From positions 124,001-188,000 of IMG/VR virus record IMGVR_UViG_3300042289_000986: a DNA stretch of 64,000 nt. One strand, written 5' to 3'. The first letter of the stretch is position 1; every line of letters starts with the position of its first letter. The translations under genes were made by a program, and so were the position numbers. Below are positions 43,058-62,745 of this stretch, one piece after another. Below the pieces are notes generated by a model. The model ran no database searches. It was not told the origin of the DNA and saw nothing but the letters and a program-made list of their open reading frames with translations.

Positions 43058-43066
43058 ATAAAAAAT

Positions 43067-46090: not shown

Positions 46091-46092
46091 TT

Positions 46093-46431
46093 ATGAAAAA
46101 CGTAGAAATATATGATCAATATGCAAATGTTTATTTGAATAATCAAACTAATGAATTAGTTGTATTAAATTTAAATTATAATGAAGAATTAGATACAAGT
46201 TTATATACTTTGGTTCATTCTAGTTCTGGTTTTGTTATATCAAAAGGTGAAAATTTAAACACGGAAAGTGCATTAAGTTTAGTCGAAGAACTTTATGTAG
46301 AATCCCAAAATTTAGGAGAAAATTATCAAGAAAAAAATATAAATTTAGAAAATGGCTACGTGGAAATGATTATATCTTTCAATGACGGTAAAAAACTTAA
46401 TAGAGTTATCTATATTAAGGATAATTTATAA
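46093..46431 (+). CDS. Hypothetical protein
   Basis: 112-aa acidic ORF, ATG at 46093. Confidence 0.65.
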   Translation: MKNVEIYDQYANVYLNNQTNELVVLNLNYNEELDTSLYTLVHSSSGFVISKGENLNTESALSLVEELYVESQNLGENYQEKNINLENGYVEMIISFNDGKKLNRVIYIKDNL

Positions 46432-46455
46432 TGTAAAGTGATAAATATTTAGAAT

Positions 46456-47907
46456 ATGGCTTTATTATCTGAAAAATATCCAATTACTCAGTCTACAGGA
46501 CCAACAGGTTCAACAGGAGCAACTGGTGCTGGCCAAACTGGTGCTACTGGAAACACTGGTATAGTAGGACCAACTGGAGCACAAGGAAATACTGGTGATA
46601 TTGGACCAACAGGCTCTCAAGGAAACACAGGTATAGTAGGCCCAACTGGAGCACAAGGAAATACTGGTGATATTGGACCAACAGGCTCTCAAGGAAACAC
46701 AGGTATAGTAGGCCCAACTGGAGCACAAGGAAATACTGGCCAAACAGGTTCGCAAGGAAACACTGGCGCAACTGGTAATGATGGATCAACTGGTCCTACA
46801 GGTTCAGGAAACACAGGAGCAACAGGTCAAACTGGAGCACAAGGAAATACAGGTGATATCGGTCCAACTGGAGCACAAGGAAATACAGGCCAAACTGGTG
46901 CTCAAGGAAATACAGGCATAGTGGGTCCAACTGGAACACAAGGAAATACAGGTGCAACAGGATCCACTGGTTTAGCAGGAGACAAATATACTACAACATC
47001 AACTACTAATACAAACATAGCCACAGGGTCAAAAACATTCACTGTTGATAGTGGTCTTGCTTATAGTATAGGACAATCTGTAATAGTTTCTTTTGATTCT
47101 TCTAATAAAATGGAAGGATCTGTTACAAGTTATTCTGGTACAACATTGATTGTAGATGTAACAACAATTACAGGTTCTGGAACATATAATAGTTGGAGCG
47201 TAAGCTTGTCTGGAGCACCTGGACCCGCTGGTTTAACAGGCGCAACGGGAGCCACTGGTACTAATGGTACGAATGGAACAACTGGAGCAACAGGTGCTAC
47301 TGGTACGGATGGAACAACAGGCGCAACGGGAGCCACTGGTACTAATGGTACGAATGGAACAACTGGAGCAACAGGTGCTACTGGTACGGATGGAACAACA
47401 GGCGCAACAGGTGCTACTGGTACGAATGGAACAAACGGATCAACTGGATCAACTGGAACAACAGGAACTACTGGTGATTCCGCTTGGAAAATATTTGATA
47501 TGAGTTTTGATTACGGTGAATATGATGTAAATAACGTTGTTACAAATGCAATTATTAGCAATGCTATAGTCACAATTCCATCTTGTGTCTTAATGGATAA
47601 TACCAGCAATACTCATGCAAGCGCAAACGTAAACATAAGACTTGTAATCTTACAAGAGTATGGAGGAATTACAAACATGACATATGATATACTTGCATAT
47701 TCTGGAGGAAGTCCAACTGTTTATACTCCAACACTAACACAATTTACAACAAATGGACCCAATAATGCTGCTACAGAGCATGTTATTGGTAACTGGTTTA
47801 CCCATAACATATCTGCACAAGGTACAACATTTCAACTAAGAGCATCTCGAAACGCTAATGGTTTTACAAGAATTAAAAAAGTTTATTTACAAGTTAGGAA
47901 AAACTGA
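46456..47907 (+). CDS. Collagen-like fibre protein with two collagen stretches
   Basis: Long G-X-T repeats; internal TTSTT...[15 protein letters not shown]...[12 protein letters not shown] domain; TAAATA at 46442-47. Confidence 0.85.
46549..46739 (+). repeat. 72-bp tandem repeat, ~2.6 copies
   Basis: Units start at 46549, 46621 and 46693; near-identical. Confidence 0.9.
47235..47408 (+). repeat. 81-bp tandem repeat, ~2.1 copies
   Basis: Units start at 47235 and 47316; identical by eye. Confidence 0.9.
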
Positions 47908-47919: not shown

Positions 47920-48135
47920 ATGGCATATTTTGATACAGAATTAAATGAAGCATGGGCATGGTTTGCGGTAAACTGGGAATTGTGGATAAATTTAAATACA
48001 TCACTAACTGATGGTTTAAAATTTGTGTTTGATAATACTGGTGGACCATCTGGACCGCATAAAGAAACACATTGGCAGTGGGTTAGAAATAATAGAGAAG
48101 AATTATTAAATTTATACAATTCTTTAAAGAACTAA
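47920..48135 (+). CDS. Small Trp-rich protein
   Basis: 71 aa, 6 Trp; follows the collagen gene. Confidence 0.65.
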   Translation: MAYFDTELNEAWAWFAVNWELWINLNTSLTDGLKFVFDNTGGPSGPHKETHWQWVRNNREELLNLYNSLKN

Positions 48136-49233
48136 TTTTTCTTTAAAAAAATTTATATTTTGTTGAATTCTTGGTTTTTGGTCTTCAGGTATTTTGTGAA
48201 TTAATTCTTCACAGATCCTTAAACCTTCTTCATAATGTCCTGTCCAATAACAAGAGACAGAAAATTCATCATCTAAACCATAATCCCATATCCAACTTTC
48301 AACAAACAAACCTGTTTTATCAATCTTTAATGTTTTAGCATATCTACCAAGAATATAAGCTTGATGATCTCTTTGATGCATTCTACAAAAACGAATAGCA
48401 CCATGCAATGCTTCAATTCTTGATGTGCATTTTTCATATGCTCGAAGATAACTTTGTACAATATCATCTTCAGGATATCCCATGATTTCTTTTAATCGAG
48501 CTATTTGATATAAAGACCAATAAACTTCTTGATCCCAACCTCCCAACTCTGCTCTTTTATTGTACCAATATATTGCCTTTCCTTTTTGTTCACAATCTTT
48601 GTATGATTGAGCAAGATAAAAAGTATATCTTGGAATTAAATGCGGGTCTTTTTCTGTTTTTAATGCATCTTCTAAGACTTTAGCATCTTTTTGATACTTT
48701 TCATTATCACTATTTCTCGCAGAATCTTGTATAGGTACATTATATATTCCTTTTGCAGTATCCCTGCTTAAAATTGGCTCTGCACACTCAAGATATTCGT
48801 GTAAAATGCTTTTATAAAAATATTTTTTAGAATTTTTAAATAAATTTGTTCTTGCATATTCAATATTTGCATATTTGCATGTTATATAATATAAATCTGC
48901 TGTTAAATTGTTTTTAAAATCGTTTACATTAAAGTTTTCATCAAATTTTAATATTTCATCAGCATCAATTGTTAAAACATAATCAATATCAGCATGTTTT
49001 CGAAGGTTTTCTAATGACTTAGTTCTGTTAAATGAAAAGTTTTCCCATTTTTCTTCATTTACTTCTCCATCAACGTTGTTATTTTTTAACCAATCTTTAA
49101 TAATTTGAATTGTATTGTCTGTTGAACCAGTATCCGATATACAAACATAATCGATTAGTGGTTTTACACTATCTAAACATCGCTGAATCACTTTAGATTC
49201 ATTTTTAACTATCATACACAAACCTATCTTCAT
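48124..49233 (-). CDS. GT2 glycosyltransferase with TPR-like C-terminus (protein-glycosyltransferase type)
   Basis: LCMIVKNE, DTGSTDNT, FSFNR, IDADE, LHEY, RYTFYLAQSY.D, helical repeats. Confidence 0.9.
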   Translation of the reverse strand: MKIGLCMIVKNESKVIQRCLDSVKPLIDYVCISDTGSTDNTIQIIKDWLKNNNVDGEVNEEKWENFSFNRTKSLENLRKHADIDYVLTIDADEILKFDENFNVNDFKNNLTADLYYITCKYANIEYARTNLFKNSKKYFYKSILHEYLECAEPILSRDTAKGIYNVPIQDSARNSDNEKYQKDAKVLEDALKTEKDPHLIPRYTFYLAQSYKDCEQKGKAIYWYNKRAELGGWDQEVYWSLYQIARLKEIMGYPEDDIVQSYLRAYEKCTSRIEALHGAIRFCRMHQRDHQAYILGRYAKTLKIDKTGLFVESWIWDYGLDDEFSVSCYWTGHYEEGLRICEELIHKIPEDQKPRIQQNINFFKEKLVL

Positions 49234-50126
49234 GTTTTAATTAACTTTAATACATTTAAATATACCATTTCTACACTAATTCCAGCCATACAAGCATGTT
49301 TTGGATCTTCATAAGTTTGATCTGGTGGATTTTGACATGGACCCATCGACATTGTACTGATTTTAGGATCTTCTTTAAAGCATGGTTGACAAGGCAAATT
49401 TAATGATATGTTAATATTAAAAGGATAACCTGTTCCGTTATATTGAGTTGAACCAAAAAGTATTATTGCTTTAGTTCTTCCCTTATTTCTCCATTGAATG
49501 TTTGATGTAACCTGAAAAACAGAATCCAATCCAATGTGACCTAGTGCCCATGCTTGGGCCGCAACTTTTTCTTCAAAAGAATCACTACAAAATGAACCAT
49601 CTATGTTATTCATGATGATATCATGAGGTCCTCCTATTTGGTATATTTCAATTTCAGGATGATTTTGTTTTATTAAATCAATTAATTTTTGCCAACCCCA
49701 CCATTCTTTATATGCAGACCACCCAGTTTTGTTTTGAAATGTAATATATCTTGGAGTATTTCGATTCTTAATTTTTTTAGGTAATGGTGGAAGATCAAGT
49801 TCAAAGTCATCAAATGTAAAATTTACACCCAATTCATTTGCAAAATAATAGAGTATATGATTTTGCATTTTTTTATGAGGATATCCTTCGTGCAATGGAT
49901 ACCCAACAAGATTTACAGTTTTTGAGAAATTATTTGAATCATATTTTTCTAACGGATAAAAATGTTCTAACAAATTATTATTTTTTACAAAATTATTTAA
50001 AATTGAATGAATAGATTCATGACAAAAATAATGCACTTCGTATTTTTCTTTTAACTGTTTTACAAAATTAAAATTTAATAAAACATCGCCAATTGCACCT
50101 GGTCGATATAAGGCTACTTTTTGCAT
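49230..50126 (-). CDS. GT9-like glycosyltransferase
   Basis: RPGAIGDVL, YKEW..W..L, QIGG, IGLDS, ILFGST, LPCQPC...C..CM.GI. Confidence 0.82.
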   Translation of the reverse strand: MQKVALYRPGAIGDVLLNFNFVKQLKEKYEVHYFCHESIHSILNNFVKNNNLLEHFYPLEKYDSNNFSKTVNLVGYPLHEGYPHKKMQNHILYYFANELGVNFTFDDFELDLPPLPKKIKNRNTPRYITFQNKTGWSAYKEWWGWQKLIDLIKQNHPEIEIYQIGGPHDIIMNNIDGSFCSDSFEEKVAAQAWALGHIGLDSVFQVTSNIQWRNKGRTKAIILFGSTQYNGTGYPFNINISLNLPCQPCFKEDPKISTMSMGPCQNPPDQTYEDPKHACMAGISVEMVYLNVLKLIKT

Positions 50127-50132: not shown

Positions 50133-50160
50133 AGTATATTTTAATATAAATAAAAATCAA
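50133..50160 (-). promoter_or_regulatory. Sigma70-type promoter for the GT9/TPR-GT2 pair
   Basis: TTGATT-16-TATACT, 6 nt before the ATG. Confidence 0.5.
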
Positions 50161-51059
50161 TAAGGACTATTGGATACTCTTGTAATAAGCATATATGGTT
50201 GAGTACCAAAATTATTATTAAATACTGGATACCCTTGATTACCGTTTCCGCCGTTTGCACCGCCATGTAAAACTGTTACCGCATAAAAAGTTTGTGGTGA
50301 TAAAAGTACACTAATAGAACCTCTTTGAGAAGATTCTCCATTTCCTGTTGTATCCGTAAATCCTTGCGCTATATTTCCAATTAAAGTTGCAAGATTTACG
50401 TTTGATGTATTAATAAATTGATTGTTTTGATATAAACGAAGTCTCATAAAATCTGTTGGATCTGTCATATCATACGAAGCATATCTTATTTCAATATTAT
50501 ATAAACCACCTTCAGTAACAGTAAAATTTGTATGTGTTCCAGTGTTGTTTCCAGTTTCTAAAACAGGAGATATATAAAACGTCAGAGGAGTATTAAAAGA
50601 AATTACATTTTCTAAATTATACAACCATCGATTCCATCGAATAACGTTTTCAATTCCATTTGTTGTGTTTGATAATCCATTATTTAAATTTATATCAAAT
50701 CTTAAATAACAAGGATTAACTGAACCAGAAGGACCAGTTGGTCCAGTTGGTCCTATTGGCCCTCCTGATGGACCAGTTGGTCCAGTTGGTCCTATTGGCC
50801 CTCCTGATGGACCAGTTGGACCTGTAACCCCTGTTGGTCCTGTGTTTCCAAAACCTGTAGCTCCAGTTGGTCCCGTTGGTCCAGTTACTCCTGTATTTCC
50901 AGAACCCGTAGCTCCAGTTGGACCAGTTGATCCTGTGTTTCCTGTAGCACCAATTGCACCCAAATTTGGGATATCAGAAGTTTCTATTACATTAATAGAA
51001 CGAACCGTAGCATCTTTGGGTTCTATATGCTTTCCATAAATGTTAAATTCCAATGCCAT
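50157..51059 (-). CDS. BclA-like protein: collagen segment + C1q/TNF-like head
   Basis: GPT/GAT repeats, then [19 protein letters not shown]...PYMLITRV. Confidence 0.78.
50731..50819 (-). repeat. 39-bp tandem repeat, ~2.3 copies
   Basis: ggaccagttggtccagttggtcctattggccctcctgat x2 on the + strand. Confidence 0.88.
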
Positions 51060-51060: not shown

Positions 51061-51270
51061 TTAATTAAATGTACCAGTTATAGGATCGTATGTTTTATCT
51101 AAAAGACTTATATCGTAATCACTTTCTATGCATAATGCGTTTTGAGTATTTGCGCTTCTATTATTATTTTCATCAATAGAAATATTAGTAACTTCAAAAT
51201 TTTCATCTTTAAAAGATGAAAATTGAATTGGTTTATTTGTAAATGGATTTATTAGAATATAGTAGTTCAT
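51061..51270 (-). CDS. Small protein, possible fibre adaptor or chaperone
   Basis: 69 aa, ends [12 protein letters not shown]; sits between two fibre genes. Confidence 0.55.
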
Positions 51271-51272: not shown

Positions 51273-51968
51273 TTAAGATATTTTTATTACATGAAAATAA
51301 GGTCTGGTTCCATATGAATTTTCAAAAACAGGAAAACCACCAGTTCCAGGAGTAGGTGTAGTAATAACTGCTGTTCCTCCAGTATGGAAAAATGTTGCAA
51401 CTATATAATAAGGAACTGCATTAACATCCAATATAAATGTACCTCTTCTTTGGGCAGCAGCGTTATTAGATGTTCCGACAATGCCATCACCGATTGTATC
51501 AATTAAAGTTCCGCCGACTGTTGTAGTTATTGGCGTTGATTGTTGTCCTCTTAATCTTAATCTTAGTGTTGCTCCAGTTGGATTATTTAAATCATAAGAA
51601 GCATATCTAATATCTATTAAATATCTTCCAGTTTGTTTTAAAATCATGTTATTTAAAGTAGCATCTGCTTCAATGATATTCGTATTTGTTTGAAGTGTTA
51701 CTGCATTCCAATCAACAATATATTCAACACTATTATATGTATTTACTAATCCAGCATTTGATGTTATTTCCATTTCGGCGGCTGGAAATGATACAGCACC
51801 ACTAGACCAACTAGCAGAATTTTGTCTTACGAAAGTTGTTACAGGTAAACCATTAGAAAAATTTATATAATTAATTTTTTTAGTTGTGCCATTATTTACA
51901 ATAGGCAAAACATCAGTATTCGCGGGTTGACTTATTTCTAATAATTGAGATATTTTTTTATCAGCCAT
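51273..51968 (-). CDS. Short fibre protein with C1q/TNF-like head
   Basis: N-terminal MADKKISQL...DVLPIVNNGTTKKI; head (TGRYLIDIRYASYD...PYFHVIKI) is paralogous to 50157..51059. Confidence 0.75.
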   Translation of the reverse strand: MADKKISQLLEISQPANTDVLPIVNNGTTKKINYINFSNGLPVTTFVRQNSASWSSGAVSFPAAEMEITSNAGLVNTYNSVEYIVDWNAVTLQTNTNIIEADATLNNMILKQTGRYLIDIRYASYDLNNPTGATLRLRLRGQQSTPITTTVGGTLIDTIGDGIVGTSNNAAAQRRGTFILDVNAVPYYIVATFFHTGGTAVITTPTPGTGGFPVFENSYGTRPYFHVIKIS

Positions 51969-52007
51969 AATATTATTTATTCGTTTTTTTCATTTTTAAA
52001 GAACAAA

Positions 52008-52838
52008 TCAAGGAGGGGGTAATACAGGTGTATCATCTTGCATAAGTCTGTCATTATCTTCAGTTAATATATATCCAAACATATTATCTAATAACAAACC
52101 AAACAATGTAGTTGATACATATTGTTGTGGTTGATTTAAATCAAACAACTCAGTAGAACCAAAAAATGTATTATTAACATTAGTCAGTGTAATTTTTGTT
52201 ATTTTTCCAGTAATTGTTAAAACGTAATTTGATTCTCCAATATTATTAAAATATGTATTTGTTGGAAATTGATGTAAAATATCATCATTTGAACCCCATA
52301 TATTTTCACCACCACTTAAATAAAAAATAATTGTTTTTCCAGTTGTAAAATTAACATAAGAATATACTTCTCCTTGAACGACACTCCGAAAAAACACATT
52401 TCCTTTGGAAGCATCAATAATATATGATCCTCCTGAAGATAAGGAAAAAGAAGTAACTACATTAGAATAAGTCCAAAAAGATGAATTAGTGTTTACTAAA
52501 GAATAAACACTGTTCCAATTAGAACTTAATGCACAAACAGTACTTGTCGAAGATGTCCATTGTGAACTTAAATTCCCAACTAAAGTTAAATCAGCACTAT
52601 TACCACCAGTACCCGTTGATTTTAAAATTAAATCGGTGTTTTGTATACCATTTTTATACCAATATTCAGTTACACCAACACCAACAGCAGAAACACCTAC
52701 CGTTAAACCAATTCTTCTGACATTTGGGTTAATATTATCATTGGCATCATTAATAGAAGACCAAGGACCGTAACGCGAATCTACGTTCGCATATGGATCA
52801 ACTAAATAAATTGGTGCTGATAAGTTAAAAGTACTCAT
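52008..52838 (-). CDS. Fibre segment protein
   Basis: N-terminal D.RYGPW...R.IGLTV...EYW.KNGI...DLI.K domain; short NWNSVYS stalk; C-terminal GYILTEDNDRLM. Confidence 0.75.
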   Translation of the reverse strand: MSTFNLSAPIYLVDPYANVDSRYGPWSSINDANDNINPNVRRIGLTVGVSAVGVGVTEYWYKNGIQNTDLILKSTGTGGNSADLTLVGNLSSQWTSSTSTVCALSSNWNSVYSLVNTNSSFWTYSNVVTSFSLSSGGSYIIDASKGNVFFRSVVQGEVYSYVNFTTGKTIIFYLSGGENIWGSNDDILHQFPTNTYFNNIGESNYVLTITGKITKITLTNVNNTFFGSTELFDLNQPQQYVSTTLFGLLLDNMFGYILTEDNDRLMQDDTPVLPPP

Positions 52839-52839
52839 T

Positions 52840-54735
52840 TTATGCTAAAGTAAAATCAATTCTAAGATTAAATGGAACTGATGTGGTTTGTACATATCTT
52901 TTATATGGCCTATCGACGCCACTTGCATCTTTCACGCTAGTTGCACTTAAAGTAAATGCGCTCGTAACGTTTTGGAAATTTTCTGTTCTTGCTAATATTA
53001 AAGATTTATTATCTGGAATAGTTAAAACCGTATTATTTTCTGTCACTTGTATTGAAAAACTATTTACGTTATCAAAACTACTCAAAGGTAAAGTTCTTAA
53101 ATTAATTGGTATTATAGCAACAGATCCATAAAATTGAATATATCTTCCCGTGTAAGATCGACTTGTTTCTACCGAATCTGCTAAAATTCTACCTCTACTA
53201 TCAGGATTTCCCAAAATATTATTTAATATCGGTCCATTATTATAAGACACAACATTTTTAAACGTTGTTGTTCCTAGTTCTACAACCTCGTTTAGAGGAT
53301 AAACAAAAGAAGCTGGTAATTGTGCTTGTAAAATGTTATTTCTATATAAAGTAAAACTTATTGCCGAACCTGCTAGGTTTTGATTCCAATTTAAATTTAA
53401 ATTTTGTACAATAACCTGTCCAACTTCATAATTTGTTGTGTTAAAATTTGTTAAACTTGCTGTTGGTGGCAAATAACCAGTCGGAGCAGGTACTAACAAG
53501 TTTAAATTGTTTTCAATATTTTGAATTTTGAATGCTATAGCACTATTTTGAACCGCATTAGTTGAACTTAAATTTAAAGCACTATCATAAATAGAAATTG
53601 TACTCCAACTTGATGATAAAGCACACACACTACTATAAACGGAGTTCCAATTTAATCCGTTAATATTAATTAAATTTCTTGCACTTAATTCAAAACCACT
53701 TGTACTTTGCCAAGTAGAATAAACAGAATTCCAATTAGAAGATAAAGAACAAGTTGTATTAAATGTACTCTCCCATTTTCCACTTAAACTGTTTAATTGA
53801 AAATTAGCATTTCCAGAATTATTGTTAACCCAAGTGTTTACTTGATTTATATTTGCACTATTATTGTTTACAAATGTTCTTGCAGATATATCGAATGCAC
53901 TATTGTTATTCCAGCTACTGTAAACACTGTTCCAATTTCCACTATTTGCATTAACATTAGTTAATACGTTTTGTATGTTAGCACTATTTGAATTTACATT
54001 ACTGAAAACACTTTCATATTTTCCACTATTGGTATTGTATATCGTATATACACTTTGATTATTACTACTATTTGTGTTTACATTACTGAAAACACTATTC
54101 CAATTACTACTATTTGAATTTACATTACTGAAAACACTTTCATACTTTCCACTGTTTGTGTTAAAAATAGTATAGTTGCTTTCATATTTTGCACTGTTTG
54201 AATTTACATTACTGAAAACACTTTCATACTTTCCACTATTGGTATTAAAAGTAGTATAATTGTTTTGATTATTAGCACTATTTGCATTTACATTACTGAA
54301 AACACTTTCGTATCTTCCGCTATTTGTGTTAAAAATGTTATATACCGAATTTAAATTTGAAGACAAAGAACAAACTGTAAAAAAATTAGAATTCCATTGA
54401 TCAGAATTTCCAGTTTTTGCATAAATTATGTTATTGGTGCTAAAGGAACTAGTGGTAGTCAAATTACCTGTTAACGCTCCACCACTCAAAGGAAGATATC
54501 CACTTAAATCAACGCTTTTTATAATTAAGTCGGTGTCAGTTATTCCATTTTTAAAATGATATTCAACAGCACCCGTTGATATTGATGATATAGCAACGGT
54601 TAAGCCTAATTGTCTCAAACCAGCCGTAACTTCTAATGCACGTTGAATGGTTGGCCAAGGACCATAGCGATAATCTAAGTTAGCCGCTGGCTGAACTATT
54701 CCTATTTTTTTGGCTAATGGAAATGTATCACTCAT
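52840..54735 (-). CDS. Long fibre protein with 14-aa Asn/Ser repeats
   Basis: Same N-terminal domain as 52008; YLPLSGG; NSGKYESVFSNVNS repeats; shared C-terminal domain. Confidence 0.8.
   Translation of the reverse strand: MSDTFPLAKKIGIVQPAANLDYRYGPWPTIQRALEVTAGLRQLGLTVAISSISTGAVEYHFKNGITDTDLIIKSVDLSGYLPLSGGALTGNLTTTSSFSTNNIIYAKTGNSDQWNSNFFTVCSLSSNLNSVYNIFNTNSGRYESVFSNVNANSANNQNNYTTFNTNSGKYESVFSNVNSNSAKYESNYTIFNTNSGKYESVFSNVNSNSSNWNSVFSNVNTNSSNNQSVYTIYNTNSGKYESVFSNVNSNSANIQNVLTNVNANSGNWNSVYSSWNNNSAFDISARTFVNNNSANINQVNTWVNNNSGNANFQLNSLSGKWESTFNTTCSLSSNWNSVYSTWQSTSGFELSARNLININGLNWNSVYSSVCALSSSWSTISIYDSALNLSSTNAVQNSAIAFKIQNIENNLNLLVPAPTGYLPPTASLTNFNTTNYEVGQVIVQNLNLNWNQNLAGSAISFTLYRNNILQAQLPASFVYPLNEVVELGTTTFKNVVSYNNGPILNNILGNPDSRGRILADSVETSRSYTGRYIQFYGSVAIIPINLRTLPLSSFDNVNSFSIQVTENNTVLTIPDNKSLILARTENFQNVTSAFTLSATSVKDASGVDRPYKRYVQTTSVPFNLRIDFTLA
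53600..54400 (-). repeat. 42-bp (14-aa) tandem repeat array
   Basis: Recurrent tttacattactgaaaacactttc; boundaries approximate. Confidence 0.85.
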
Positions 54736-57470
54736 GATAAGGTTATAGTAAAGTTGCTGTTATATGGATTAACAGTTGTATATGTATACAACTTATAATC
54801 TCTTGGTGTTCCACCAGCATCTGGAACTTGGATTGAAGATAAACTAAATTCAGTTGTAAGAGTTTCAAAACTTCCTGTGATAATACTTACGAGTTGTTTT
54901 GAAGATGGTATAGCTATAGCAATATTTCTAGTGTAAACATAAAATGTAAAACTATTAGTGGTTGTGTAGTTCGATCCTGTTAAATTTCTAATTAAAGATG
55001 GTGTAGCAGGAATAGAATTAACCGATCCAAAAAATTGTCGATAATATGCATTATAATCACGATTGATGCTCTTTGTTCCAGCAGGAATTACATCTCTTGC
55101 ATCTGGTAAACCAAGCGCATTTTGTTTTACTGCGCCCGATAAGTGAGTTACAATACAAGTATATCTAGTCAATCCTAAATCTGCTGGTTCACTTACATTA
55201 CGAGTAAATGGAGTAGATTGCTCTTGAACTAATGTAGAATTTTTTTCTAATCTATAATTTGTAGCAGCACCACCATCGTTTTGCGTATAACCTAAAACCA
55301 AACTTCTTGTTACAGTTTGTCCAACTTCAAATTCTGTTGGACTAAATGTGGTAAGAGTGGCGGCTGGTGCTGTATATGTTGGCGCAGGAACTAATACGTT
55401 TAGACTATTTTCAATTTGTAAAATTCTATTTGTTACGGCACTGTTTGTTACTGTATTTGTAGATGTAGCATTTAATTGTTGATCAACACTGCTTAAAGGA
55501 ATGAATTTACTGTTACTAAACAATATAGTTGCATACGTAGAACTATTCGAACATACACTACTATAAAGACTGTTAAAGTTGGAAGAATTTTGATTTACAA
55601 AAGTTCTAGCATTTAAATCCAATGAACTATTTGCATTTGAATTTGTATAAACACTCTCCCATCTTCCAGAAAGTGCTTTTAAATCAGTTCCTTGATAATT
55701 CCAAACTGTCCCTGAATTATTTTGTACTGTAATATAAGTTTCTTGCCAATTACTTGAATTTGAATTTACATTACTAAAAACGCTATTAAAGTTATCTGAT
55801 AAAGAACAAACAGTTGAAAAATTACTAACCCAAAATGAAGAATTGTTTAATGTGTTTGTATAGTTACTATTCCAATTAGCACTATTTGAATTTACATTAC
55901 TGAAAACATTTTCATACTTGGAAGAGTTTGAATTTACATTACTGAAAACACTTTCATACTTTCCACTGTTTGTATTGTATATCGTATATACACTTTGATT
56001 GTTAGCACTATTTGAATTTACATTACTAAAAACACTTTCATATTTTCCACTATTTGAATTAAACGTAGTATAGTTGCTTTCATATTTCCCACTATTGGCA
56101 TTAAATCTACTAAAAACACTTTCATACTTGGAAGAGTTAGAGTTTACATTACTGAAAACACTTTGATTGTTAGCACTATTTGAATTTACATTACTGAAAA
56201 CACTTTCATATTTTCCACTATTTGTGTTAAATGTAGTGTAATTGCTACCATACTGTGCGCTATTTGAATTAAACGTAGTATAGTTGCTTTCATATTTCCC
56301 ACTATTGGCATTAAATCTACTAAAAACACTTTCATATTTTGCAGAATTTGAATTGTTAGTCGAATAAACACTATCCCAATTTTGAATATTTAAATTATTT
56401 CCTAAAACTTTTCCTGATGCACTTAAATCACCAAATATTAAAGTATTACCGACCAAATTACCTTCAATATTAGCTTTTAATGTATCAATTTTTAAAGTAG
56501 AATCATTAATATCAACATTTTGACCAGAAATTGAACTTAAGTTTGAAAACAAAAACCATTTTTTTGTAAAAGCATCTCTAACTAATCCTGAATACCTTTG
56601 ACCTAAGTCAATTGCTGATGTATAACCAACAAAACCAATATCAACAATATCCGCAGGATTTCCAGAAGCCAAATAAATTAAAGAATTGCTTAATACTAAA
56701 TCTTCAGTTGTAATTTGGGTCGAAGATCCTAAAAGGAATAAATTTCCACCAATACTAACATCACCTAAAACATAACCACCACTTAATGCTAAAAAATTAT
56801 TAGCAGTATATTGTTTTGTGGCAAAACTACTACTGTTTGAATTGTAGTTTGAATAAACACTGTCCCAATTTGCGCTTGTAGTGTTTACTTTAGAGTTAAC
56901 ATTATTGAGATTGGCACTATTATTGTTTACAAAAGTTCGAACATCAACAAAACTAGAACTATTATTGTTAAAAGAACTATAAACACTATTCCAAATTGCA
57001 GAATTAGAATTTACATTACTAAAAACGCTTTCATATTTTGCAGAATTTAAATTATTAGTCGAATAAACACTATTCCAATTATTAGAATATAAATTGACAA
57101 TAGATTCAGTGTTTTCCCAGCCTGAAGAATTATTAAGCGTGATTGTATAAACACTATCCCAATTTGCAGAGTTTGAATTTACAAAATTATAATTTGAAAT
57201 CCAATTAGCAGAATTTGTATTAACTGTATTAAAAGTATTTTCCCAATTAGCGGATAATGTTCCTGTTTGTAACGGAAGAACAGACTTATCTCCTCTTATT
57301 ATATAAGCAGCATTTAAAGCTGTAACAGAAACAATCTGTCCAACATATGCCGTTGGATTTGTCGCTGCATATGCTGTTAACTGCTGATATGTAGCAACAA
57401 CAAGAGTATCATCAATTGGAAAATTTCCCAATCTTAAAAAATTTGTTGGTAATGATACAGGATCTGCCAT
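54732..57470 (-). CDS. Long fibre protein with 14-aa Asn/Ser repeats
   Basis: N-terminal F.R.GNFPID...TAYVGQIVSV; repeats; central DIGF.G...YSGLVRDA domain; shared C-terminal domain. Confidence 0.8.
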   Translation of the reverse strand: MADPVSLPTNFLRLGNFPIDDTLVVATYQQLTAYAATNPTAYVGQIVSVTALNAAYIIRGDKSVLPLQTGTLSANWENTFNTVNTNSANWISNYNFVNSNSANWDSVYTITLNNSSGWENTESIVNLYSNNWNSVYSTNNLNSAKYESVFSNVNSNSAIWNSVYSSFNNNSSSFVDVRTFVNNNSANLNNVNSKVNTTSANWDSVYSNYNSNSSSFATKQYTANNFLALSGGYVLGDVSIGGNLFLLGSSTQITTEDLVLSNSLIYLASGNPADIVDIGFVGYTSAIDLGQRYSGLVRDAFTKKWFLFSNLSSISGQNVDINDSTLKIDTLKANIEGNLVGNTLIFGDLSASGKVLGNNLNIQNWDSVYSTNNSNSAKYESVFSRFNANSGKYESNYTTFNSNSAQYGSNYTTFNTNSGKYESVFSNVNSNSANNQSVFSNVNSNSSKYESVFSRFNANSGKYESNYTTFNSNSGKYESVFSNVNSNSANNQSVYTIYNTNSGKYESVFSNVNSNSSKYENVFSNVNSNSANWNSNYTNTLNNSSFWVSNFSTVCSLSDNFNSVFSNVNSNSSNWQETYITVQNNSGTVWNYQGTDLKALSGRWESVYTNSNANSSLDLNARTFVNQNSSNFNSLYSSVCSNSSTYATILFSNSKFIPLSSVDQQLNATSTNTVTNSAVTNRILQIENSLNVLVPAPTYTAPAATLTTFSPTEFEVGQTVTRSLVLGYTQNDGGAATNYRLEKNSTLVQEQSTPFTRNVSEPADLGLTRYTCIVTHLSGAVKQNALGLPDARDVIPAGTKSINRDYNAYYRQFFGSVNSIPATPSLIRNLTGSNYTTTNSFTFYVYTRNIAIAIPSSKQLVSIITGSFETLTTEFSLSSIQVPDAGGTPRDYKLYTYTTVNPYNSNFTITLS
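55740..56385 (-). repeat. 42-bp (14-aa) tandem repeat array
   Basis: Includes a ~77-bp duplicate at ~56050 and ~56260 (210 bp = 5 units apart). Confidence 0.85.
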
Positions 57471-57471
57471 A

Positions 57472-60456
57472 TTAGATAGTTATAATATAAGAAGTTGCCG
57501 ATCCAAACGGAATTAAAGGTGTGAAATAATACACTCTATAATTAGTTGGAAAAAGATTGTTTGCAGCAGATACGCTGACTGTTGTTTGTGTAAATGTAGT
57601 TTTTACATCGCTTTGAAGCGGTGGATAGAAAATTGTAGTTACTGCTTGAAGAGATGCAGGATATGCAAGTATGACTCTGTTTGCTCCTGCTGGAACATTT
57701 ATAGTGAATTGACTTCCATTTTGAGGGTTTAAAAGATTTTGAGTTAAAGCTCTTACTTGTGGTGAAGTTGTTGGTACAAAATTTTGAACATCGGCCCCAA
57801 AAAATGCTCTTCTTCTACCGTTTAAAGTCATGGATGTCGATACACTATTTTCTGGATCTGGAGTTAGATATATATTATTTCTACTATCGTATGGCTGATC
57901 ACCTTGTCCATAATTACAGGTAACATTATAAACGTTTGATCCATCTAAAATAATTGCTTGAGCAGATGTAGTTGTAAATGTAGAATTTGTTGTATTTGTT
58001 GCGGAGCTAAAAGCAACATAACTCGTTGCTGGACCCGTTCTAAAATTCTGAAACGTATTTGGTTCCCATATACTATTAACAGTTTTACCAACAATTTGTC
58101 CGCGAGTATAATTTAATGTTAATTGAACTGATGTTGTTCCTATTTCTACGTTTGTTCCATTACCACCATGATTACTTGTAACTGTTAACGTTCTGTTTGT
58201 AAAAGTTGGATAATAAATTTTTGTTAAAAGTGCTTGAACAAATTGTTGAAAAGTTGTTCCTGCATTAAAAACCTGTGCAGCAGTTATTGCACCCACAGAC
58301 AAATCACTTGTTACGGTAGATGTTAATTTTCCTAAATTTGACCAATCCGAACTTAATCCAGTAGCCAATGAATATATTGAACTCCAACTGGCACTGTTTG
58401 TATTAACTGTTGTATTTAAGCTAATAATATTAGAACTATTATTGTTTACAAAAGTCCTTGCTGCTAAATCCAAACCACTATTTTGATTCAAAGTCGTATA
58501 AGAACTATTCCAATTTGCAGATAAACTAAAAACAGTATTATAAACACTATTATCGGCACTAGTAGTTTGTACAAAATTTTGAACTTCTAATAAGTTTCCA
58601 CTATTTTGATTCCACGTAGTATAAGCACTATCCCAGTTCGCACTAGTATTATTAGTGACAGAATTTACGGCTAAAATATTTGAACTATTACTGTTTACAA
58701 AAGTCCTTGCTGCTAAATCCAAACTACTATTTTGATTCCAAGTAGTATAAACACTGTTCCAATTTGTTGATAATGAACAAACAGTATTATAAACACTATT
58801 GTTAGCACTTGTAGTTTGTACAAAATTTTCAACTGCTTTTAAATTTGAACTAAGATTATTCCAGCTACTATAAACACTATCCCAATTTCCACTTGTGGTG
58901 TTAACTTTAGTGTTAACATTAATAATATTTGAACTGTTTGTGTTTACAAAAGTCCTTGCTGCTAAATCTAAACCACTATTTTGATTCCAAGTAGTAAAAG
59001 AACTATTCCAGTTAGCACTAGTGTTGTTAGTGACAGAATTTACTTGTAATATATTTGAACTGTTTGTGTTTACAAAAGTCCTTGCTGCTAAATCTAAACC
59101 ACTATTTTGATTCCACGTAGTATAAGCACTATCCCAGTTCGCACTTGTTGAGTTTACTTTAGTGTTAACATTAATAATATTTGAACTATTACTGTTTACA
59201 AAACTTCTTGCGGCTAAATCAAATGCACTGTTAGAATTCCAGCTACTATAAACACTATCCCAATTTCCACTCGTTTGAATGACTTTACTATTAACTTGTA
59301 AAGAATTTGAACTATTATTGTTTACAAAACTTCTTGCGGCTAAATTCAAACCACTATTTTGATTCCAAGTAGTATAAACACTGTCCCAGTTCGCACTCGT
59401 TTGATTGACTTTACTATTAACTTGTAAAGAATTTGCGCTGTTATTATTAACAAAAGTTCTTGCGGCTAAATCAAATGCACTATTAGAATTCCAGCTACTA
59501 TAAACACTATTCCAGTTGGCACTAGTATTGTTAGTAAGTGAATTTACTTGTAATATGTTTGAACTATTTGATAAAACAAAACTTACGATTTCATTTTGAT
59601 CTTCTTCGTTTGCACTAGTTTGATTAATATATGAATAAACACTATTCCATAAATTGGAATTTCCACCTAAAGCATAGATGACATTTGTTGAGCTTAAAAT
59701 TGCACTAGTAGAAAGATTACCAATTAAATAACCCCCACTTAGTGGCAAATATCCAGTAACAATATTGACTAAATTACCACCTGCTGCATAAGATGCTGAA
59801 TTTGCTAAAAGATTTGTATAAGCTTGTTGCCAAAACGATGAGTTACTACGAGTTGTACTATAAACAGAATTCCAAATAGCAGCACTGACTGTTGAAAGAT
59901 TAACATAAAATGAAGAACTTTTGGAAATGTTTGTAAATGATTGATTCCAATTTTCATAATTTGAAAGAACTTGTTGTGAAGTAAAAATCCAGTTTGCGGA
60001 GTTGGTTATTACTAAATTTCCAACAGGTCCAAATTTTAAAATTTTATTTGCAGTGTCAACATAAAATGCATCCTGTGCAGCACTAACTAAAGATAAATCA
60101 CTTTGGTTGGCTTTTAATGCCAAAGCTGTAATTTGTGCTAAAGAAAGAGGCTTATTTAAATCACTGGTATTATCAACTTGATCTAAACCAATTTCATCTT
60201 TAGTTATGATTACATGACCAATTTTTCCATTAACACTAAAAACAAAACCACCTTGATTTATGTTTATTGTTTCGTTTATATTTAAATCCGTTGGATTAAT
60301 TGAAACGTTTGGTGAAGAAATAGAACTAACGTTTATTATAGATGTATCAATACCATCATTTACATTTACAGATTGATTGGTTGTATTTGGGTTTGCATTT
60401 ATTACAACCAAATCTGTAGATGATGGATTAACATTTACTATAATTGAATCACTCAT
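57472..60456 (-). CDS. Very long fibre protein with NW(N/D)SVY repeats
   Basis: SVNGKIG.V...IGLDQVDNTSDLNKP fibre motif; YLPLSGG; repeats; shared C-terminal domain. Confidence 0.8.
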   Translation of the reverse strand: MSDSIIVNVNPSSTDLVVINANPNTTNQSVNVNDGIDTSIINVSSISSPNVSINPTDLNINETININQGGFVFSVNGKIGHVIITKDEIGLDQVDNTSDLNKPLSLAQITALALKANQSDLSLVSAAQDAFYVDTANKILKFGPVGNLVITNSANWIFTSQQVLSNYENWNQSFTNISKSSSFYVNLSTVSAAIWNSVYSTTRSNSSFWQQAYTNLLANSASYAAGGNLVNIVTGYLPLSGGYLIGNLSTSAILSSTNVIYALGGNSNLWNSVYSYINQTSANEEDQNEIVSFVLSNSSNILQVNSLTNNTSANWNSVYSSWNSNSAFDLAARTFVNNNSANSLQVNSKVNQTSANWDSVYTTWNQNSGLNLAARSFVNNNSSNSLQVNSKVIQTSGNWDSVYSSWNSNSAFDLAARSFVNSNSSNIINVNTKVNSTSANWDSAYTTWNQNSGLDLAARTFVNTNSSNILQVNSVTNNTSANWNSSFTTWNQNSGLDLAARTFVNTNSSNIINVNTKVNTTSGNWDSVYSSWNNLSSNLKAVENFVQTTSANNSVYNTVCSLSTNWNSVYTTWNQNSSLDLAARTFVNSNSSNILAVNSVTNNTSANWDSAYTTWNQNSGNLLEVQNFVQTTSADNSVYNTVFSLSANWNSSYTTLNQNSGLDLAARTFVNNNSSNIISLNTTVNTNSASWSSIYSLATGLSSDWSNLGKLTSTVTSDLSVGAITAAQVFNAGTTFQQFVQALLTKIYYPTFTNRTLTVTSNHGGNGTNVEIGTTSVQLTLNYTRGQIVGKTVNSIWEPNTFQNFRTGPATSYVAFSSATNTTNSTFTTTSAQAIILDGSNVYNVTCNYGQGDQPYDSRNNIYLTPDPENSVSTSMTLNGRRRAFFGADVQNFVPTTSPQVRALTQNLLNPQNGSQFTINVPAGANRVILAYPASLQAVTTIFYPPLQSDVKTTFTQTTVSVSAANNLFPTNYRVYYFTPLIPFGSATSYIITI
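58380..59660 (-). repeat. Higher-order repeat of three 14-aa subunits (126 bp)
   Basis: SANWDSVYTTWNQNSGLDLAARTFVNTNSSNILQVNSVTNNT-like units; boundaries approximate. Confidence 0.85.
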
Positions 60457-60842
60457 TGTGGAATAGGCGAATGTTCAGGTATTTGTGTCATTACCTCCCA
60501 ATAATTTTGAGGAAGATTTGAAACAATTGGCCAATGACCCATGAGATATGTTTTTACTTCATTGTTTTGTAATTTTAATCGAATACGCCATTTATACAAA
60601 TCAACAGGAATGTTTACCGTGGTGGCTGGAACTGATATTGTTCCATTTAATGGGTTTGTTATTAAAACACCGCTATTTGAAGAATTTAATGAAAAAACAA
60701 CAGGACTGTCAATTGATCTTAAAACTTCCATTTCAACAAATGCATTTGTAAGATTTAATGCAGAGTTGTTTCTTTGAAAAGTTATACTGTTAATACCTTC
60801 CCAAGTATCACCAGTTATGTGTGGCGGAATATCATAAGTCAT
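60453..60842 (-). CDS. BppU-N-like Ig-fold adaptor protein
   Basis: GDTW...ALNLTNA.V.M.V...NGTI.V...YKW.I.L......KTYL.G; TAAGTA at 60854-49. Confidence 0.6.
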   Translation of the reverse strand: MTYDIPPHITGDTWEGINSITFQRNNSALNLTNAFVEMEVLRSIDSPVVFSLNSSNSGVLITNPLNGTISVPATTVNIPVDLYKWRIRLKLQNNEVKTYLMGHWPIVSNLPQNYWEVMTQIPEHSPIPQ

Positions 60843-60876: not shown

Positions 60877-62745
60877 TTAGCTTGCTGTAGGAATTGTAGG
60901 AGTTTCTGATGCTGCCGTTTCTGGTGCTGCTGTTTCTCCTCCACCTTCCGTTCCAGCTTCTGCTTCAGGGGTTTCTGCTGCTTCTCCACCGCCAGTTTCA
61001 CCAAATTCTGGTATTTCGGATGCACTTGTTCCACCACCACCAGAATCAAGTCCACCGCCTTCTGTAGATGCATCTTCTGCTGCTTGAATGTGTTCTCTCC
61101 AATTTGGACCTGTTGTTGCAATTTGTTCCAATTCCCATTTCAATGCTGCATCCTTTCTTAACCATTCCATATTTTCACTTATACGAGAATCATTATATTC
61201 CAGATAATGTCTTTGAGCAAAAGTTTTTGATATAGATTCGTTTTGACACATATCATTGAAAATTTTGAATTTTAATTCAAATTCTTGATTTTTGCGAATA
61301 GCAAAGAAGTTTGATGGTGGATTAAATTCTAAATTAAAGTAAGATTCGTGAAGTTTGTAATCTTTCCACCAGTTTCTTATTTTTAAATGTGTAATAAATG
61401 CGTTTTTAATTCCTTCTGCAAATTGACTTTGTAAACGGACAATAAATTTTGCAAAACGGAGTTCCTCTCTTAAAATTTCTGCACCATCTTTGTAACCTTC
61501 TTCAGGATTTAATCTGGTTAAAGGAACTTTTAAACTTTTATAAAGTTTATTGACAAAATACATCAAGTCTTTAAGCTCTCCAAGGTTTTGTCCACCTTGC
61601 ATTAACTCTACGTCTGATCCTTGTTCTCCAGAACGCTTGGCAAACCAATATGAGTCTAACATTGATTGTGGATCATATATATTTGCTGCTCCCGATTGTC
61701 CCTTATTACTATCGTAAGATTTTTTATTCCAATAAGATTGCATTAACTGGCGCAAATATGCTTCTGCTTTTGCTGGTGGCATATTTCCGACATCAATTTT
61801 GAATTTTAATCTTTCAGGGGCACGAACCATTCTATAAATAACAATAGAGTCTTCAATCAAAGAAAGTTGTTTATATGCTCTTCTTGCGTTTTCAATAAAA
61901 GGAACTCGCATCGTCATATCCTCATTCCATAAACCAGAATTTACATATGTTACTTGGTTTCCTTGAAACGTCACAATTTGTTGTTGTAAAGCATTTGCTG
62001 GAGTTGGTGGTTGGAAGTTGGATTGGCTTAATTGGGCCGCTGGATTTTGTTGTAAACTAATTGGTTTTTGAAAAACAAAATTTTGTACAACGTTGTTTTG
62101 AACATTATCATATACCGGATTTATTAATTCAGAAGGAACACTCAAAACACCAATAATACCAAGTTCTTTTTTTGCTTCATGGATAATATTTTCAAAAAAT
62201 ACTTCTCCTTCTACTAATAATTGACGACAATATCCCCAACCTTTATTTTCAAAATCAAAAACATTTACGAACTTGTAAAATTCTTTTTCGAGTTCGCTTC
62301 TTTCTTTATTTTCTAATTTAGAAAAACTAGAAAATTGAATTTTTATAACTTTTCCATTTTCATCTTTATTGACAAATTCATCACAAATTTCATCTAAACA
62401 ATCGCCAACTTCAGCATAAGCTGCCATTCTTCTATATTCAGCCAATCTTCTTGTCTTATCAGTATCTACTTGGGCATAAATGTATTTGTGATAAGCTTGA
62501 TCTGAAACAAAACTATTTGGACTATATGAGTCACCAACATCCTTCATATAAGGACCTGTGATGACAGATTGTTGCATCAACCTTAGTTCTTTTCTTTTAG
62601 AAAGACGGTCAAATAATTCATATCTTGGATTATTAACGTCAGCTTCTATTGTTTGTTGAACATAAGGAAGTTTTGATAAAATTGAAGAAACAAAACTTCT
62701 ACCAGTATCTGGTTGACGGTTACTTGTTTGGAAAAAATCTGCCAT
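60877..62745 (-). CDS. 20: Portal protein, gp20-like
   Basis: EYRRMA, QLSLIEDSIVIYRMVRAPER, IDVGNMP..KAEAYL, SMLDSYWF, GGQNLGE, LYKSLKVP..RL, REELRFAKF. Confidence 0.97.
   Translation of the reverse strand: MADFFQTSNRQPDTGRSFVSSILSKLPYVQQTIEADVNNPRYELFDRLSKRKELRLMQQSVITGPYMKDVGDSYSPNSFVSDQAYHKYIYAQVDTDKTRRLAEYRRMAAYAEVGDCLDEICDEFVNKDENGKVIKIQFSSFSKLENKERSELEKEFYKFVNVFDFENKGWGYCRQLLVEGEVFFENIIHEAKKELGIIGVLSVPSELINPVYDNVQNNVVQNFVFQKPISLQQNPAAQLSQSNFQPPTPANALQQQIVTFQGNQVTYVNSGLWNEDMTMRVPFIENARRAYKQLSLIEDSIVIYRMVRAPERLKFKIDVGNMPPAKAEAYLRQLMQSYWNKKSYDSNKGQSGAANIYDPQSMLDSYWFAKRSGEQGSDVELMQGGQNLGELKDLMYFVNKLYKSLKVPLTRLNPEEGYKDGAEILREELRFAKFIVRLQSQFAEGIKNAFITHLKIRNWWKDYKLHESYFNLEFNPPSNFFAIRKNQEFELKFKIFNDMCQNESISKTFAQRHYLEYNDSRISENMEWLRKDAALKWELEQIATTGPNWREHIQAAEDASTEGGGLDSGGGGTSASEIPEFGETGGGEAAETPEAEAGTEGGGETAAPETAASETPTIPTAS

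Follow-up and report, generated by a model that had tools for sequence, protein, structure and literature searches.

A domain pair spanning gene boundaries that very probably joins phage fibre proteins end to end

Are the large fibre-like proteins encoded in succession downstream of a phage portal gene independent appendages, or are they segments of one fibre joined by matching terminal domains? We addressed this question for an uncultured T4-like phage, using a 64,000-nucleotide stretch of IMG/VR record IMGVR_UViG_3300042289_000986 (positions 124,001 to 188,000; hereafter the window, in whose coordinates all positions are given). The initial annotation of this sequence had noted that three consecutive proteins share a C-terminal domain and that each following protein begins with a shared N-terminal domain, and had inferred connectors that join five trimeric segments of about 3000 aa in total. 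Our analysis confirms that this arrangement of domains is real. The inference of serial connectors is partly supported, as the genomic evidence for a joint is strong, whereas physical contact, trimeric linear geometry and the fifth segment do not follow from it.

All genes concerned are located on the minus strand and are named here by protein length. The operon starts with a T4 gp20-type portal gene (60877-62745; Pfam Portal_T4, E 4e-100; PHROG 213; about 30% identity to cyanophage portals) and continues into the fibre genes. It is followed by g129 (60453-60842), a small conserved protein directly ahead of the first chain gene and a candidate adaptor or anchor. The initial annotation called g129 BppU-like, but we found no Pfam, NCBIfam or PDB sequence match, and its family, PHROG 1084, is of unknown function. 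In contigs and loci retrieved for comparison (L numbers; a name such as L002_758 denotes a protein encoded there), g129 is 91% identical to its counterpart in L002 and 38% identical to the 110-aa protein ahead of the first chain gene in L005. The chain itself consists of g994 (57472-60456), g912 (54732-57470), g631 (52840-54735) and g276 (52008-52838). Genes g129 and g994 overlap by 4 nt, g994 and g912 are separated by 1 nt, g912 and g631 overlap by 4 nt, and g631 and g276 are separated by 1 nt, i.e., spacing within the chain is -4 to +1 nt.

The proteins g994, g912 and g631 each end in a homologous domain of about 230 aa (C-dom), and g912, g631 and g276 each begin with a homologous domain of about 75 aa (N-dom). 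The C-doms of g631 and g912 share 39% identity over 251 aa (E 5e-54), while g994 is only weakly similar by BLAST (E 0.003). However, a profile of g994-type C-doms aligned to a profile of g631-type C-doms with an hhalign probability of 96.9% (E 1.3e-10 over 194 columns). Likewise, the N-doms of g631 and g276 are 47% identical (E 9e-24), and that of g912, which has no BLAST similarity to either, was recovered by comparison of its subtype profile with the g631/g276 subtype profile (probability 94.5%, E 8e-8 over 70 columns). Three junction subtypes, A, B and C, were distinguished, and these profile comparisons set subtype B against subtype A for the C-dom and against subtypes A/C for the N-dom. 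The first chain protein, g994, has its own N-terminus (MSDSIIVNVNP...), a widespread tail-fibre motif at aa ~65-148, an Asn/Ser-rich shaft with 14/42-aa periodicity, and a subtype-B C-dom (aa ~737-994, 57475-58248; HMM match aa 737-993), the proposed socket of junction 1. This C-dom is of the same subtype as those of L007_366p and of SSIP-1 ORF56. The proposed plug of junction 1 is the subtype-B N-dom of g912 (aa 1-75, 57246-57470; ...FPIDDT...NPTAYVGQ...). The same N-dom subtype follows subtype-B C-doms in L007 and SSIP-1 and is also found downstream in FP_Brigit, where no subtype was assigned to the C-dom. In g912, which is 96% identical to L010_912, a 14-aa-repeat shaft leads to a subtype-A C-dom (aa 679-912, 54735-55436), the proposed socket of junction 2. 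Its proposed plug is the subtype-A N-dom of g631 (aa 1-80, 54496-54735; D.RYGPW...GLTV...EY.FKNG..D.DLI.K). After a shaft, g631 ends in a further subtype-A C-dom (aa 400-631, 52843-53538), the proposed socket of junction 3, whose proposed plug is the subtype-A N-dom of g276 (aa 1-80, 52599-52838). The terminal protein g276 lacks a C-dom and has a variable distal part ending in G[YF][IL]L.ED...L (...GYILTEDNDRLMQDDTPVLPPP), and its orthologues of 300, 342, 360 and 477 aa have differing C-terminal parts.

The proposed fifth segment, g231 (51273-51968), is a short fibre-like protein with a KISQL-type N-terminus (MADKKISQL). It is syntenic with the chain, as orthologues of 217-225 aa follow the terminal protein in L002, L003, L007 and two further contigs, but it has no C-dom/N-dom junction to it. 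Protein g276 lacks the C-dom, g231 has a different N-terminus, and a 39-nt gap separates the two genes. A C1q-like head, as proposed in the initial annotation, was also not supported, because g231 had no Pfam or PDB sequence match. Instead, its C-terminal ~175 aa are paralogous (30% identity, E 6e-17) to the C-terminus of g300 (50157-51059), a collagen-like fibre protein assigned to PHROG tail-fibre families with a weak Pfam Collagen hit. Between these two genes lies g69 (51061-51270), a small conserved ORF without assigned function, with orthologues of 69-75 aa in the same position.

If the two domains form a joint, a gene ending in a C-dom should be followed by a gene starting with an N-dom also in other genomes, a test that had been proposed beforehand and that came out strongly positive. 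In five related contigs plus the window, every gene ending in a C-dom is followed by a gene starting with an N-dom, the first gene has a different N-terminus, and the last gene lacks the C-dom. The same order was found in a prophage in bacterial assembly GCA_003633615.1 (L012), in a baseplate-J-type phage (L013) and in L014. In IMG/VR loci seeded with the C-dom and scanned with HMMs built beforehand, 53 of 58 genes directly downstream of a C-dom gene start with an N-dom, the misses look N-dom-like by eye, and only 1 of 54 N-dom ORFs lies elsewhere. The non-redundant count was 40/42 against 1/283 (Fisher p ~1e-47). In loci seeded with the N-dom, 50 of 51 non-redundant N-dom genes follow a C-dom gene. 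One N-dom gene (L052/L135) follows a protein with no detectable C-dom. Both broad locus samples were seeded with subtype-C patterns, and the exclusivity is thus best established for that subtype. Across more than 100 unrelated loci, adjacency is near-obligate in both directions. The C-dom always lies at the extreme C-terminus and was never the last fibre element, as every C-dom gene with sequence downstream has such a partner (the misses above judged by eye only). The pairing also holds in cultured phages. In the tailless membrane phage SSIP-1, ORF56 (C-dom B) is followed by gp57, annotated as structural protein, which has an N-dom B, and in Faecalibacterium phage FP_Brigit a 529-aa protein is followed by a 104-aa protein that is little more than an N-dom. 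In crAss002, gp18 is a match to the C-dom model at fold level only (BFVD E 2e-6, TM 0.33) and lies directly upstream of gp19, which carries an N-dom. Tenacibaculum phage PTm5 is a further cultured carrier.

The subtypes match across the gene boundary in all 13 junctions (Mantel r = 0.93, p<=1e-4; within subtype A alone, r = 0.83, p = 5e-5). L007_452 and L005_574 share their C-dom and the downstream N-dom, but their own N-doms are of subtype B and C, respectively, each matching its own upstream gene. Covariation between the two domains was analyzed in 87 non-redundant pairs, in which the top MI-APC was 0.252 as compared to 0.143 +/- 0.005 for shuffled pairings. This value still exceeded most within-clade shuffles (4, 1 and 0 of 200 reach it), and several top pairs link the N-terminal arm to the second sandwich of the predicted structures described below. 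However, co-inheritance of two tightly linked domains can by itself produce subtype matching, mirror-tree correlation and most of the MI signal, and the intergenic target for recombination is only a few nucleotides. An alternative hypothesis is that each protein is anchored separately on the virion through its N-terminus, that the C-dom is a distal receptor- or glycan-binding Ig-like head, and that both domains stay adjacent only as co-inherited neighbours with recombination confined to the shafts. We consider this unlikely, because near-obligate adjacency is maintained across unrelated virus types while both flanks are freely replaced. Among 35 non-redundant full-length pairs (595 comparisons), C-doms are similar in 515 and N-doms in 480, but the rest of the upstream protein in 185 and the rest of the downstream protein in only 23. 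The C-dom is thus about as conserved as the N-dom, whereas hypervariability, the behaviour expected of the true receptor-binding end, is found in the distal part of the downstream protein. Whole-gene replacement of the downstream fibre by one without an N-dom was never seen, and downstream proteins of 104-170 aa are little more than an N-dom and have nothing else to anchor with.

Comparison of relatives further shows that whole junction units are gained or lost, giving 3, 4 or at least 4 linked proteins. Protein g631 is a mosaic relative to L010, combining the N-part of L010_678 with the C-part of L010_1284, so that one junction is missing. Similarly, L002_758 combines the N-part of g994 (78% identity over the N-terminal 339 aa) with a subtype-A C-dom, so that the B junction and the g912 segment are missing. 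The unit that is added or dropped is a junction cassette, with recombination inside the shafts, rather than a whole gene as initially proposed. For independently anchored fibres, a chain length that varies from 3 to at least 4 genes between close relatives would require matching changes in virion docking sites.

Neither domain has a Pfam, NCBIfam or PDB counterpart. AlphaFold2 models of single chains predict the C-dom (aa 392-631 of g631, pLDDT 95.9) as a helix followed by two Ig/FN3-like beta-sandwich domains, for which PDB fold hits were only generic Ig/FN3/CARDB, with none at E<=1e-3. The N-dom (aa 1-85 of g276, pLDDT 84.9) is predicted as an extended N-terminal arm of ~20 aa followed by a small alpha/beta domain, without a PDB fold or sequence match. 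While tandem Ig/FN3-like folds are also typical of carbohydrate-binding or decorative domains, which is in accordance with the hypothesis of independent fibres, two sandwiches per chain after a helical neck could also splay as a tripod. The joint could then be real but branched, with each of the three Ig-like arms of a C-dom trimer binding its own N-dom trimer, or with lateral attachment of the N-dom protein, resulting in a tree-like appendage (1 to 3 to 9 ...). Branched receptor-binding complexes are present in phiKp24 (PMC9700779). They also occur in CBA120 and G7C. We regard branching as improbable, as gene spacing of -8 to +15 nt fits translational coupling and suggests roughly equimolar synthesis, and no similarity to the T4 gp10-type branching domains used in known branched systems was found. 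Some chain members have collagen (Gly-X-Y) shafts between the N-dom and C-dom, which provides a trimeric context. Very small downstream proteins (104-170 aa) would also be compatible with the downstream N-dom protein being a chaperone or assembly factor for the upstream C-dom protein, by analogy with tail-fibre assembly proteins, and not a serial structural segment. Fibre chaperone genes usually follow their client gene. A Pam3 example has been described (PMC9608196). Yet this reading is very unlikely, as most downstream proteins are long fibre proteins of up to 1398 aa, with collagen or repeat shafts, a K1-lyase_C domain or their own C-dom, and SSIP-1 gp57 is annotated as a structural protein.

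The principle of several fibre proteins encoded by consecutive genes and joined end to end, with the proximal protein first and the receptor-binding protein last, is known from the long tail fibre (gp34-gp35-gp36-gp37) of phage T4 (PMC5537660, PMC3004832), with which the phage studied here shares a T4-type portal. However, we found no Pfam or PHROG hit indicating similarity to gp34-37 and no evident monomeric hinge protein like gp35, and the genes sit directly downstream of the portal gene. T4 joints are each different, whereas here one homologous domain pair is reused three times in the window and recurs in more than 100 unrelated loci. A second comparison is with the T2/T6-type gp37-gp38 adhesin (PMC3157838) and with tail-fibre plus downstream tip or chaperone gene pairs. 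There, the product of the downstream gene attaches to the C-terminal end of the upstream fibre protein and supplies the variable distal function. The domains are unrelated to those described here, and here the downstream partner is usually itself a long fibre and can carry a further socket. In the branched complexes built on T4 gp10-like/XD domains, conserved N-terminal anchor domains let exchangeable receptor-binding proteins dock on another fibre protein, but docking is lateral and onto N-terminal branching domains, whereas here the proposed socket is at the extreme C-terminus, the pair spans a gene boundary, and fold and sequence searches gave no similarity to gp10-type domains. In crassvirus PhicrAss001, gp22 binds additional tail-fibre proteins (PMC10172136), but these and the fibre-fibre joints are unresolved in the cryo-EM maps, so that no structural counterpart of the cassette exists yet.

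Based on combined interpretation of these findings, we propose, with a probability of roughly 0.7, that the C-dom is a docking platform at the distal end of one fibre protein, with a short helical neck and two Ig/FN3-like sandwiches, and that the N-dom, with its conserved arm, is the matching plug on the protein encoded by the next gene. Our analysis demonstrates homology of the domains, near-obligate adjacency in both directions, subtype matching across the gene boundary, a conserved cassette with exchanged flanks, cassette gain and loss between relatives, and confident monomer folds. In contrast, physical contact, trimer-on-trimer linear geometry, orthogonality of the paralogous joints, and the site on the virion (baseplate or neck) where g994 is located, perhaps via g129, are inferred, and no baseplate genes lie in the window. 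Orthogonality of the paralogous joints, which share 39-47% identity, is in particular an assumption. Both g631 and L005_734 carry an N-dom and a C-dom of the same subtype, so that a promiscuous joint would allow self-polymerisation or skipping of segments. In this view, one such joint in most phages links a virion-proximal fibre protein to an exchangeable distal module, which can be a long fibre, a collagen fibre, a depolymerase-type protein or a tiny cap. In the T4-like lineage studied here the joint would be iterated, with g994 (own anchor, C-dom B) joining g912 (N-dom B, C-dom A), which joins g631 (N-dom A, C-dom A), which joins g276 (N-dom A, variable tip). The product would be one segmented fibre whose order follows gene order, and whose segment number would change by recombination inside the repetitive shafts, which adds or removes a whole cassette of C-dom and following N-dom and leaves every remaining joint matched.

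The phage, represented in the window by part of the 211.6-kb IMG/VR contig IMGVR_UViG_3300042289_000986, has a low GC content (~30%) and encodes a T4 gp20-type portal (Pfam, E 4e-100) that is only ~30% identical to cyanophage portals, together with T4-like replication genes and a gp15-like tail sheath stabiliser. On the minus strand the portal gene is followed by g129, the fibre genes g994, g912, g631 and g276, then g231, g69, the collagen-like g300 and two glycosyltransferase-like genes (genes named by protein length). Spacing from g129 to g276 is -4 to +1 nt, whereas 39 nt separate g276 from g231. The ~230-aa C-terminal domain (C-dom) lies at the extreme C-terminus of g994 (aa 737-993), g912 (aa 679-912) and g631 (aa 400-631), and at gaps of +1, -4 and +1 nt, respectively, the next gene on the same strand starts with the ~75-aa N-terminal domain (N-dom), within the spacing of about -8 to +30 nt by which we define the junction cassette. 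The C-doms of g631 and g912 (39% identity, E 5e-54) and the N-doms of g631 and g276 (47% identity, E 9e-24) are clearly homologous by BLAST. BLAST alone did not connect the g994 C-terminus or the g912 N-terminus to the others, but profile-profile comparison confirmed both (probability 96.9%, E 1.3e-10, and probability 94.5%, E 8e-8, respectively). g276 has the N-dom but no C-dom. The domain arrangement described in the initial annotation is thus confirmed. The shafts are Asn/Ser-rich with a 14-aa period and its multiples 28 and 42. Given the adjacent glycosyltransferase-like genes (window 48124-50126, minus strand), whose position directly downstream of the fibre module is conserved in relatives (L002 15598-17600; L003 10479-13709, with an added methyltransferase), we tested whether the shafts are enriched in N-x-S/T sequons, which they are not.

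Two labels of the initial annotation could not be confirmed. A BppU-like adaptor was claimed for g129, but this protein had no Pfam hit at E<=0.01, no PDB or NCBIfam match, and was assigned only to PHROG 1084 of unknown function. A C1q-like head was claimed for g231, which had no Pfam hit and no PDB sequence hit, although a remote structural resemblance is not excluded by these sequence searches. g231 (51273-51968) and g300 (50157-51059) share a paralogous C-terminal head of ~175 aa (30% identity, E 6e-17), and the first 33 aa of g300 are 61% identical to the start of L003_737. A second cluster of fibre-like genes with collagen repeats (629, 367 and 483 aa) follows the gp15-like tail sheath stabiliser gene (PHROG 227) at 40283-47907 on the plus strand, but none of these genes carries the C-dom or the N-dom. 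Further away, at 21636-27068 on the minus strand, a nucleotide-sugar epimerase (PHROG 540) is followed by a run of six ORFs of 233-268 aa with overlapping ends, which together with a glycosyltransferase at 14685-16001 may be a sugar-modification cluster.

A homologue search with the g631 C-dom, complemented by inspection of the respective contigs and one metagenome locus, yielded related freshwater contigs that share the same gene order. A small g129-like protein precedes a first protein with its own N-terminus and a C-dom, followed by zero to several middle proteins with both domains, a last protein with an N-dom and no C-dom, and finally a 217-231-aa and a 69-75-aa protein. While the chain in the window comprises proteins of 994, 912, 631 and 276 aa, in this order, those in the related loci comprise 912, 678, 1284 and 342 aa in L010, where the start of the chain is cut, 758, 1206 and 360 aa in L002, 384 (partial), 1265, 481 and 300 aa in L003, 2123, 734, 574 and 280 (partial) aa in L005, and 366 (partial), 452 and 477 aa in L007. 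A related phage contig of sample 3300059473 carrying the same fibre module also encodes a ferredoxin-dependent bilin reductase, ribosomal protein S21, a PQ-loop protein and an Hc1-like protein.

Three junction subtypes (A, B and C) were distinguished, and the subtype of each C-dom equals that of the next N-dom in 13 of 13 junctions, which are B-B, A-A and A-A in the window. The similarity matrices of C-doms and N-doms are strongly correlated (Mantel r = 0.93, p<=1e-4), also within subtype A alone (r = 0.83, p = 5e-5). The proteins themselves are mosaics, as g912 and L007_452 combine an N-dom B with a C-dom A, and L005_574 combines an N-dom C, collagen and a C-dom A. The conserved unit is therefore the junction and not the gene. 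Junction units are also gained and lost. g912 is 96% identical to L010_912, but g631 matches L010_678 at its N-terminal end and the end of L010_1284 over its last 326 aa (75% identity), and the window therefore lacks the junction between the 678-aa and 1284-aa proteins. Likewise, aa 1-339 of g994 are 78% identical to L002_758, which ends in a subtype-A C-dom, and L002 therefore lacks the B junction and the g912 segment. In every case the remaining joints stay matched.

The domain pair is not restricted to this lineage. A profile of 13 C-doms retrieved 2586 representative clusters at 50% identity (E<=1e-3) among 1.84 billion proteins, with many different N-termini, and in the best 150 of these clusters the match ends at the protein's end in almost all. 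In three distant contexts, i.e., a prophage in bacterial assembly GCA_003633615.1, a phage with a baseplate-J-type tail and a marine contig, the next gene starts with an N-dom. A scan of IMG/VR with subtype-C C-doms gave 51 loci, which were analyzed with HMMs built before these loci were seen. Of 60 C-dom ORFs, 58 had a downstream ORF and 53 of those started with an N-dom, while the five misses have N-dom-like N-termini by eye, and only 1 of 54 N-dom ORFs was not downstream of a C-dom. The non-redundant count, for which the HMM was partly re-trained, was 40/42 against 1/283 other ORFs (Fisher p ~1e-47). The reverse, N-dom-seeded scan gave 79 loci with 51 non-redundant N-dom genes, of which 50 follow a C-dom gene. 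Most loci have one junction and only 9 of 123 have two or three within +/-5 kb, which places the three junctions of the window at the upper end. Pattern scans with alignments A1 and A6 returned only the window's own contig or two loci, the broad alignment A5 was too diverse for such scans, and a scan of genome contigs gave one Mucilaginibacter prophage.

The only N-dom gene without a detectable upstream C-dom (locus L052 9077-10324 / L135 8737-10251) is preceded by a gene for a 1215-aa protein that ends ...YWVVTYKVYPSNK..., which resembles the terminal motif of the C-dom and may be a fourth, divergent socket type. At L065/L066 (4326-7617), both the C-dom protein and the downstream N-dom-like protein begin with signal-peptide-like hydrophobic N-termini and the genes are 118 nt apart, which could represent a cellular or secreted derivative of the pair. 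We also searched for a fusion of C-dom and N-dom in one chain, but the only protein with an internal C-dom (P0081, 937 aa, from the cluster search) has two tandem C-doms at aa 488-716 and 818-936. A search in other loci for a second joint type, between g276-like C-termini and KISQL/ISELP-type N-termini, yielded too few cases to be informative.

While tblastn searches of cultured phages with g912 (50,697 phage records), g129 and the g631 C-dom found nothing, the pair is present in several cultured phages. [quoted passage not shown] Presence of the same junction as in tailed phages implies exchange of fibre modules across virus realms. Faecalibacterium phage FP_Brigit encodes a 529-aa C-dom protein (of no assigned subtype) followed by a 104-aa protein with a subtype-B N-dom. 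In crAss002, gp19 has an N-dom, whereas the upstream gp18 is not detected by sequence. However, the 322-aa crAss002 protein A0A7S5UMU2, taken to be gp18 from its length, is a fold match to the C-dom model in BFVD (E 2e-6). For PhicrAss001, gp22 is reported to bind further fibre proteins that are unresolved (PMC10172136).

Among 35 non-redundant full-length pairs (595 comparisons), similarity was detectable in 515 comparisons for the C-dom and 480 for the N-dom, but in only 185 for the rest of the upstream protein and 23 for the rest of the downstream protein. This is the pattern of a conserved anchor and its docking site with an exchangeable, fast-evolving distal module, and it argues against the alternative that the C-dom is the receptor-binding end. 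The C-dom (g631 aa 392-631) is predicted to fold as a helix followed by two beta-sandwich domains (AlphaFold2, pLDDT 95.9). PDB fold matches were generic Ig/FN3/CARDB-like with none at E<=1e-3, and BFVD matches were uncharacterised or 'tail fibre' proteins of uncultured, crAss-like and Tenacibaculum phages. The N-dom (g276 aa 1-85) is predicted to consist of an extended arm of ~20 residues and a small alpha/beta domain (pLDDT 84.9) and has no PDB match. PDB sequence searches gave nothing significant for either domain, and neither has a Pfam or NCBIfam family. A self-cleaving C-terminal intramolecular chaperone domain of the Peptidase_S74 type is rejected, as no Pfam hit was obtained for 60 C-doms and the predicted fold is a tandem beta-sandwich. 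Similarity of the socket domain to T4 gp10-like branching or XD domains was likewise not found, either by Pfam or as a significant PDB fold match at E<=1e-3.

In 87 non-redundant pairs the mirror-tree r is 0.75, and the mean of the top 30 inter-domain MI-APC values is 0.252, against 0.143 +/- 0.005 for shuffled pairings. Within-clade shuffles reached the observed value in 4, 1 and 0 of 200 trials at three clustering depths. Several top pairs link N-dom columns 4-13 to C-dom columns 158-202, which is suggestive of, and compatible with, contact between the N-terminal arm and the second sandwich but cannot be separated from co-inheritance.

The most economical reading is that C-dom and N-dom are cognate docking modules and that g994, g912, g631 and g276 form one segmented fibre in gene order. 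The interpretation of the initial annotation, a daisy-chained fibre joined by plug and socket connectors, is therefore partly supported, its core strongly so by comparative genomics. Homology of the domains, their adjacency, the matching of subtypes and the gain and loss of junction units are results of our sequence comparisons, whereas physical binding of the two domains, serial end-to-end and linear rather than branched assembly, membership of g231 and attachment to the baseplate or the neck could at most be inferred. The genes lie next to portal and neck genes, i.e., gp13 in L002 and L007 and the gp15-like gene in the window. Collagen shafts in some chain members imply trimers, and self-compatible proteins such as g631 would have to avoid polymerising. 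The proposed assembly is analogous in principle to that of the T4 long tail fibre proteins gp34-gp37 (PMC5537660) but uses an unrelated and reusable domain pair that has itself not been described. No Pfam, PHROG or NCBIfam match linked g994, g912, g631 or g276 to gp34, gp35, gp36 or gp37.

It is tempting to propose, although we consider this slightly less likely than not, that the pair is a previously unrecognised, virosphere-wide coupling system for fibres, used by T4-like myoviruses, crAss-like phages, Bacteroidota prophages, a Faecalibacterium phage and even a tailless membrane-containing phage. In this view, subtypes and paralogues would be mutually orthogonal, so that gene order dictates assembly order, and fibre length and distal specificity would evolve by inserting, deleting or swapping whole cassettes. 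Fibre-to-fibre joints are the least resolved part of phage adsorption machines; they are flexible and hence missing from cryo-EM maps such as that of PhicrAss001 (PMC10172136). A conserved and recognisable domain pair that marks where one fibre protein docks on the next would allow thousands of 'hypothetical' fibre genes to be linked into complexes during annotation, considering the number of clusters found for the C-dom alone. It would also explain how distal receptor-binding modules are exchanged without disturbing the virion, and would give a simple genetic mechanism, cassette gain and loss within repetitive shafts, for changing fibre length.
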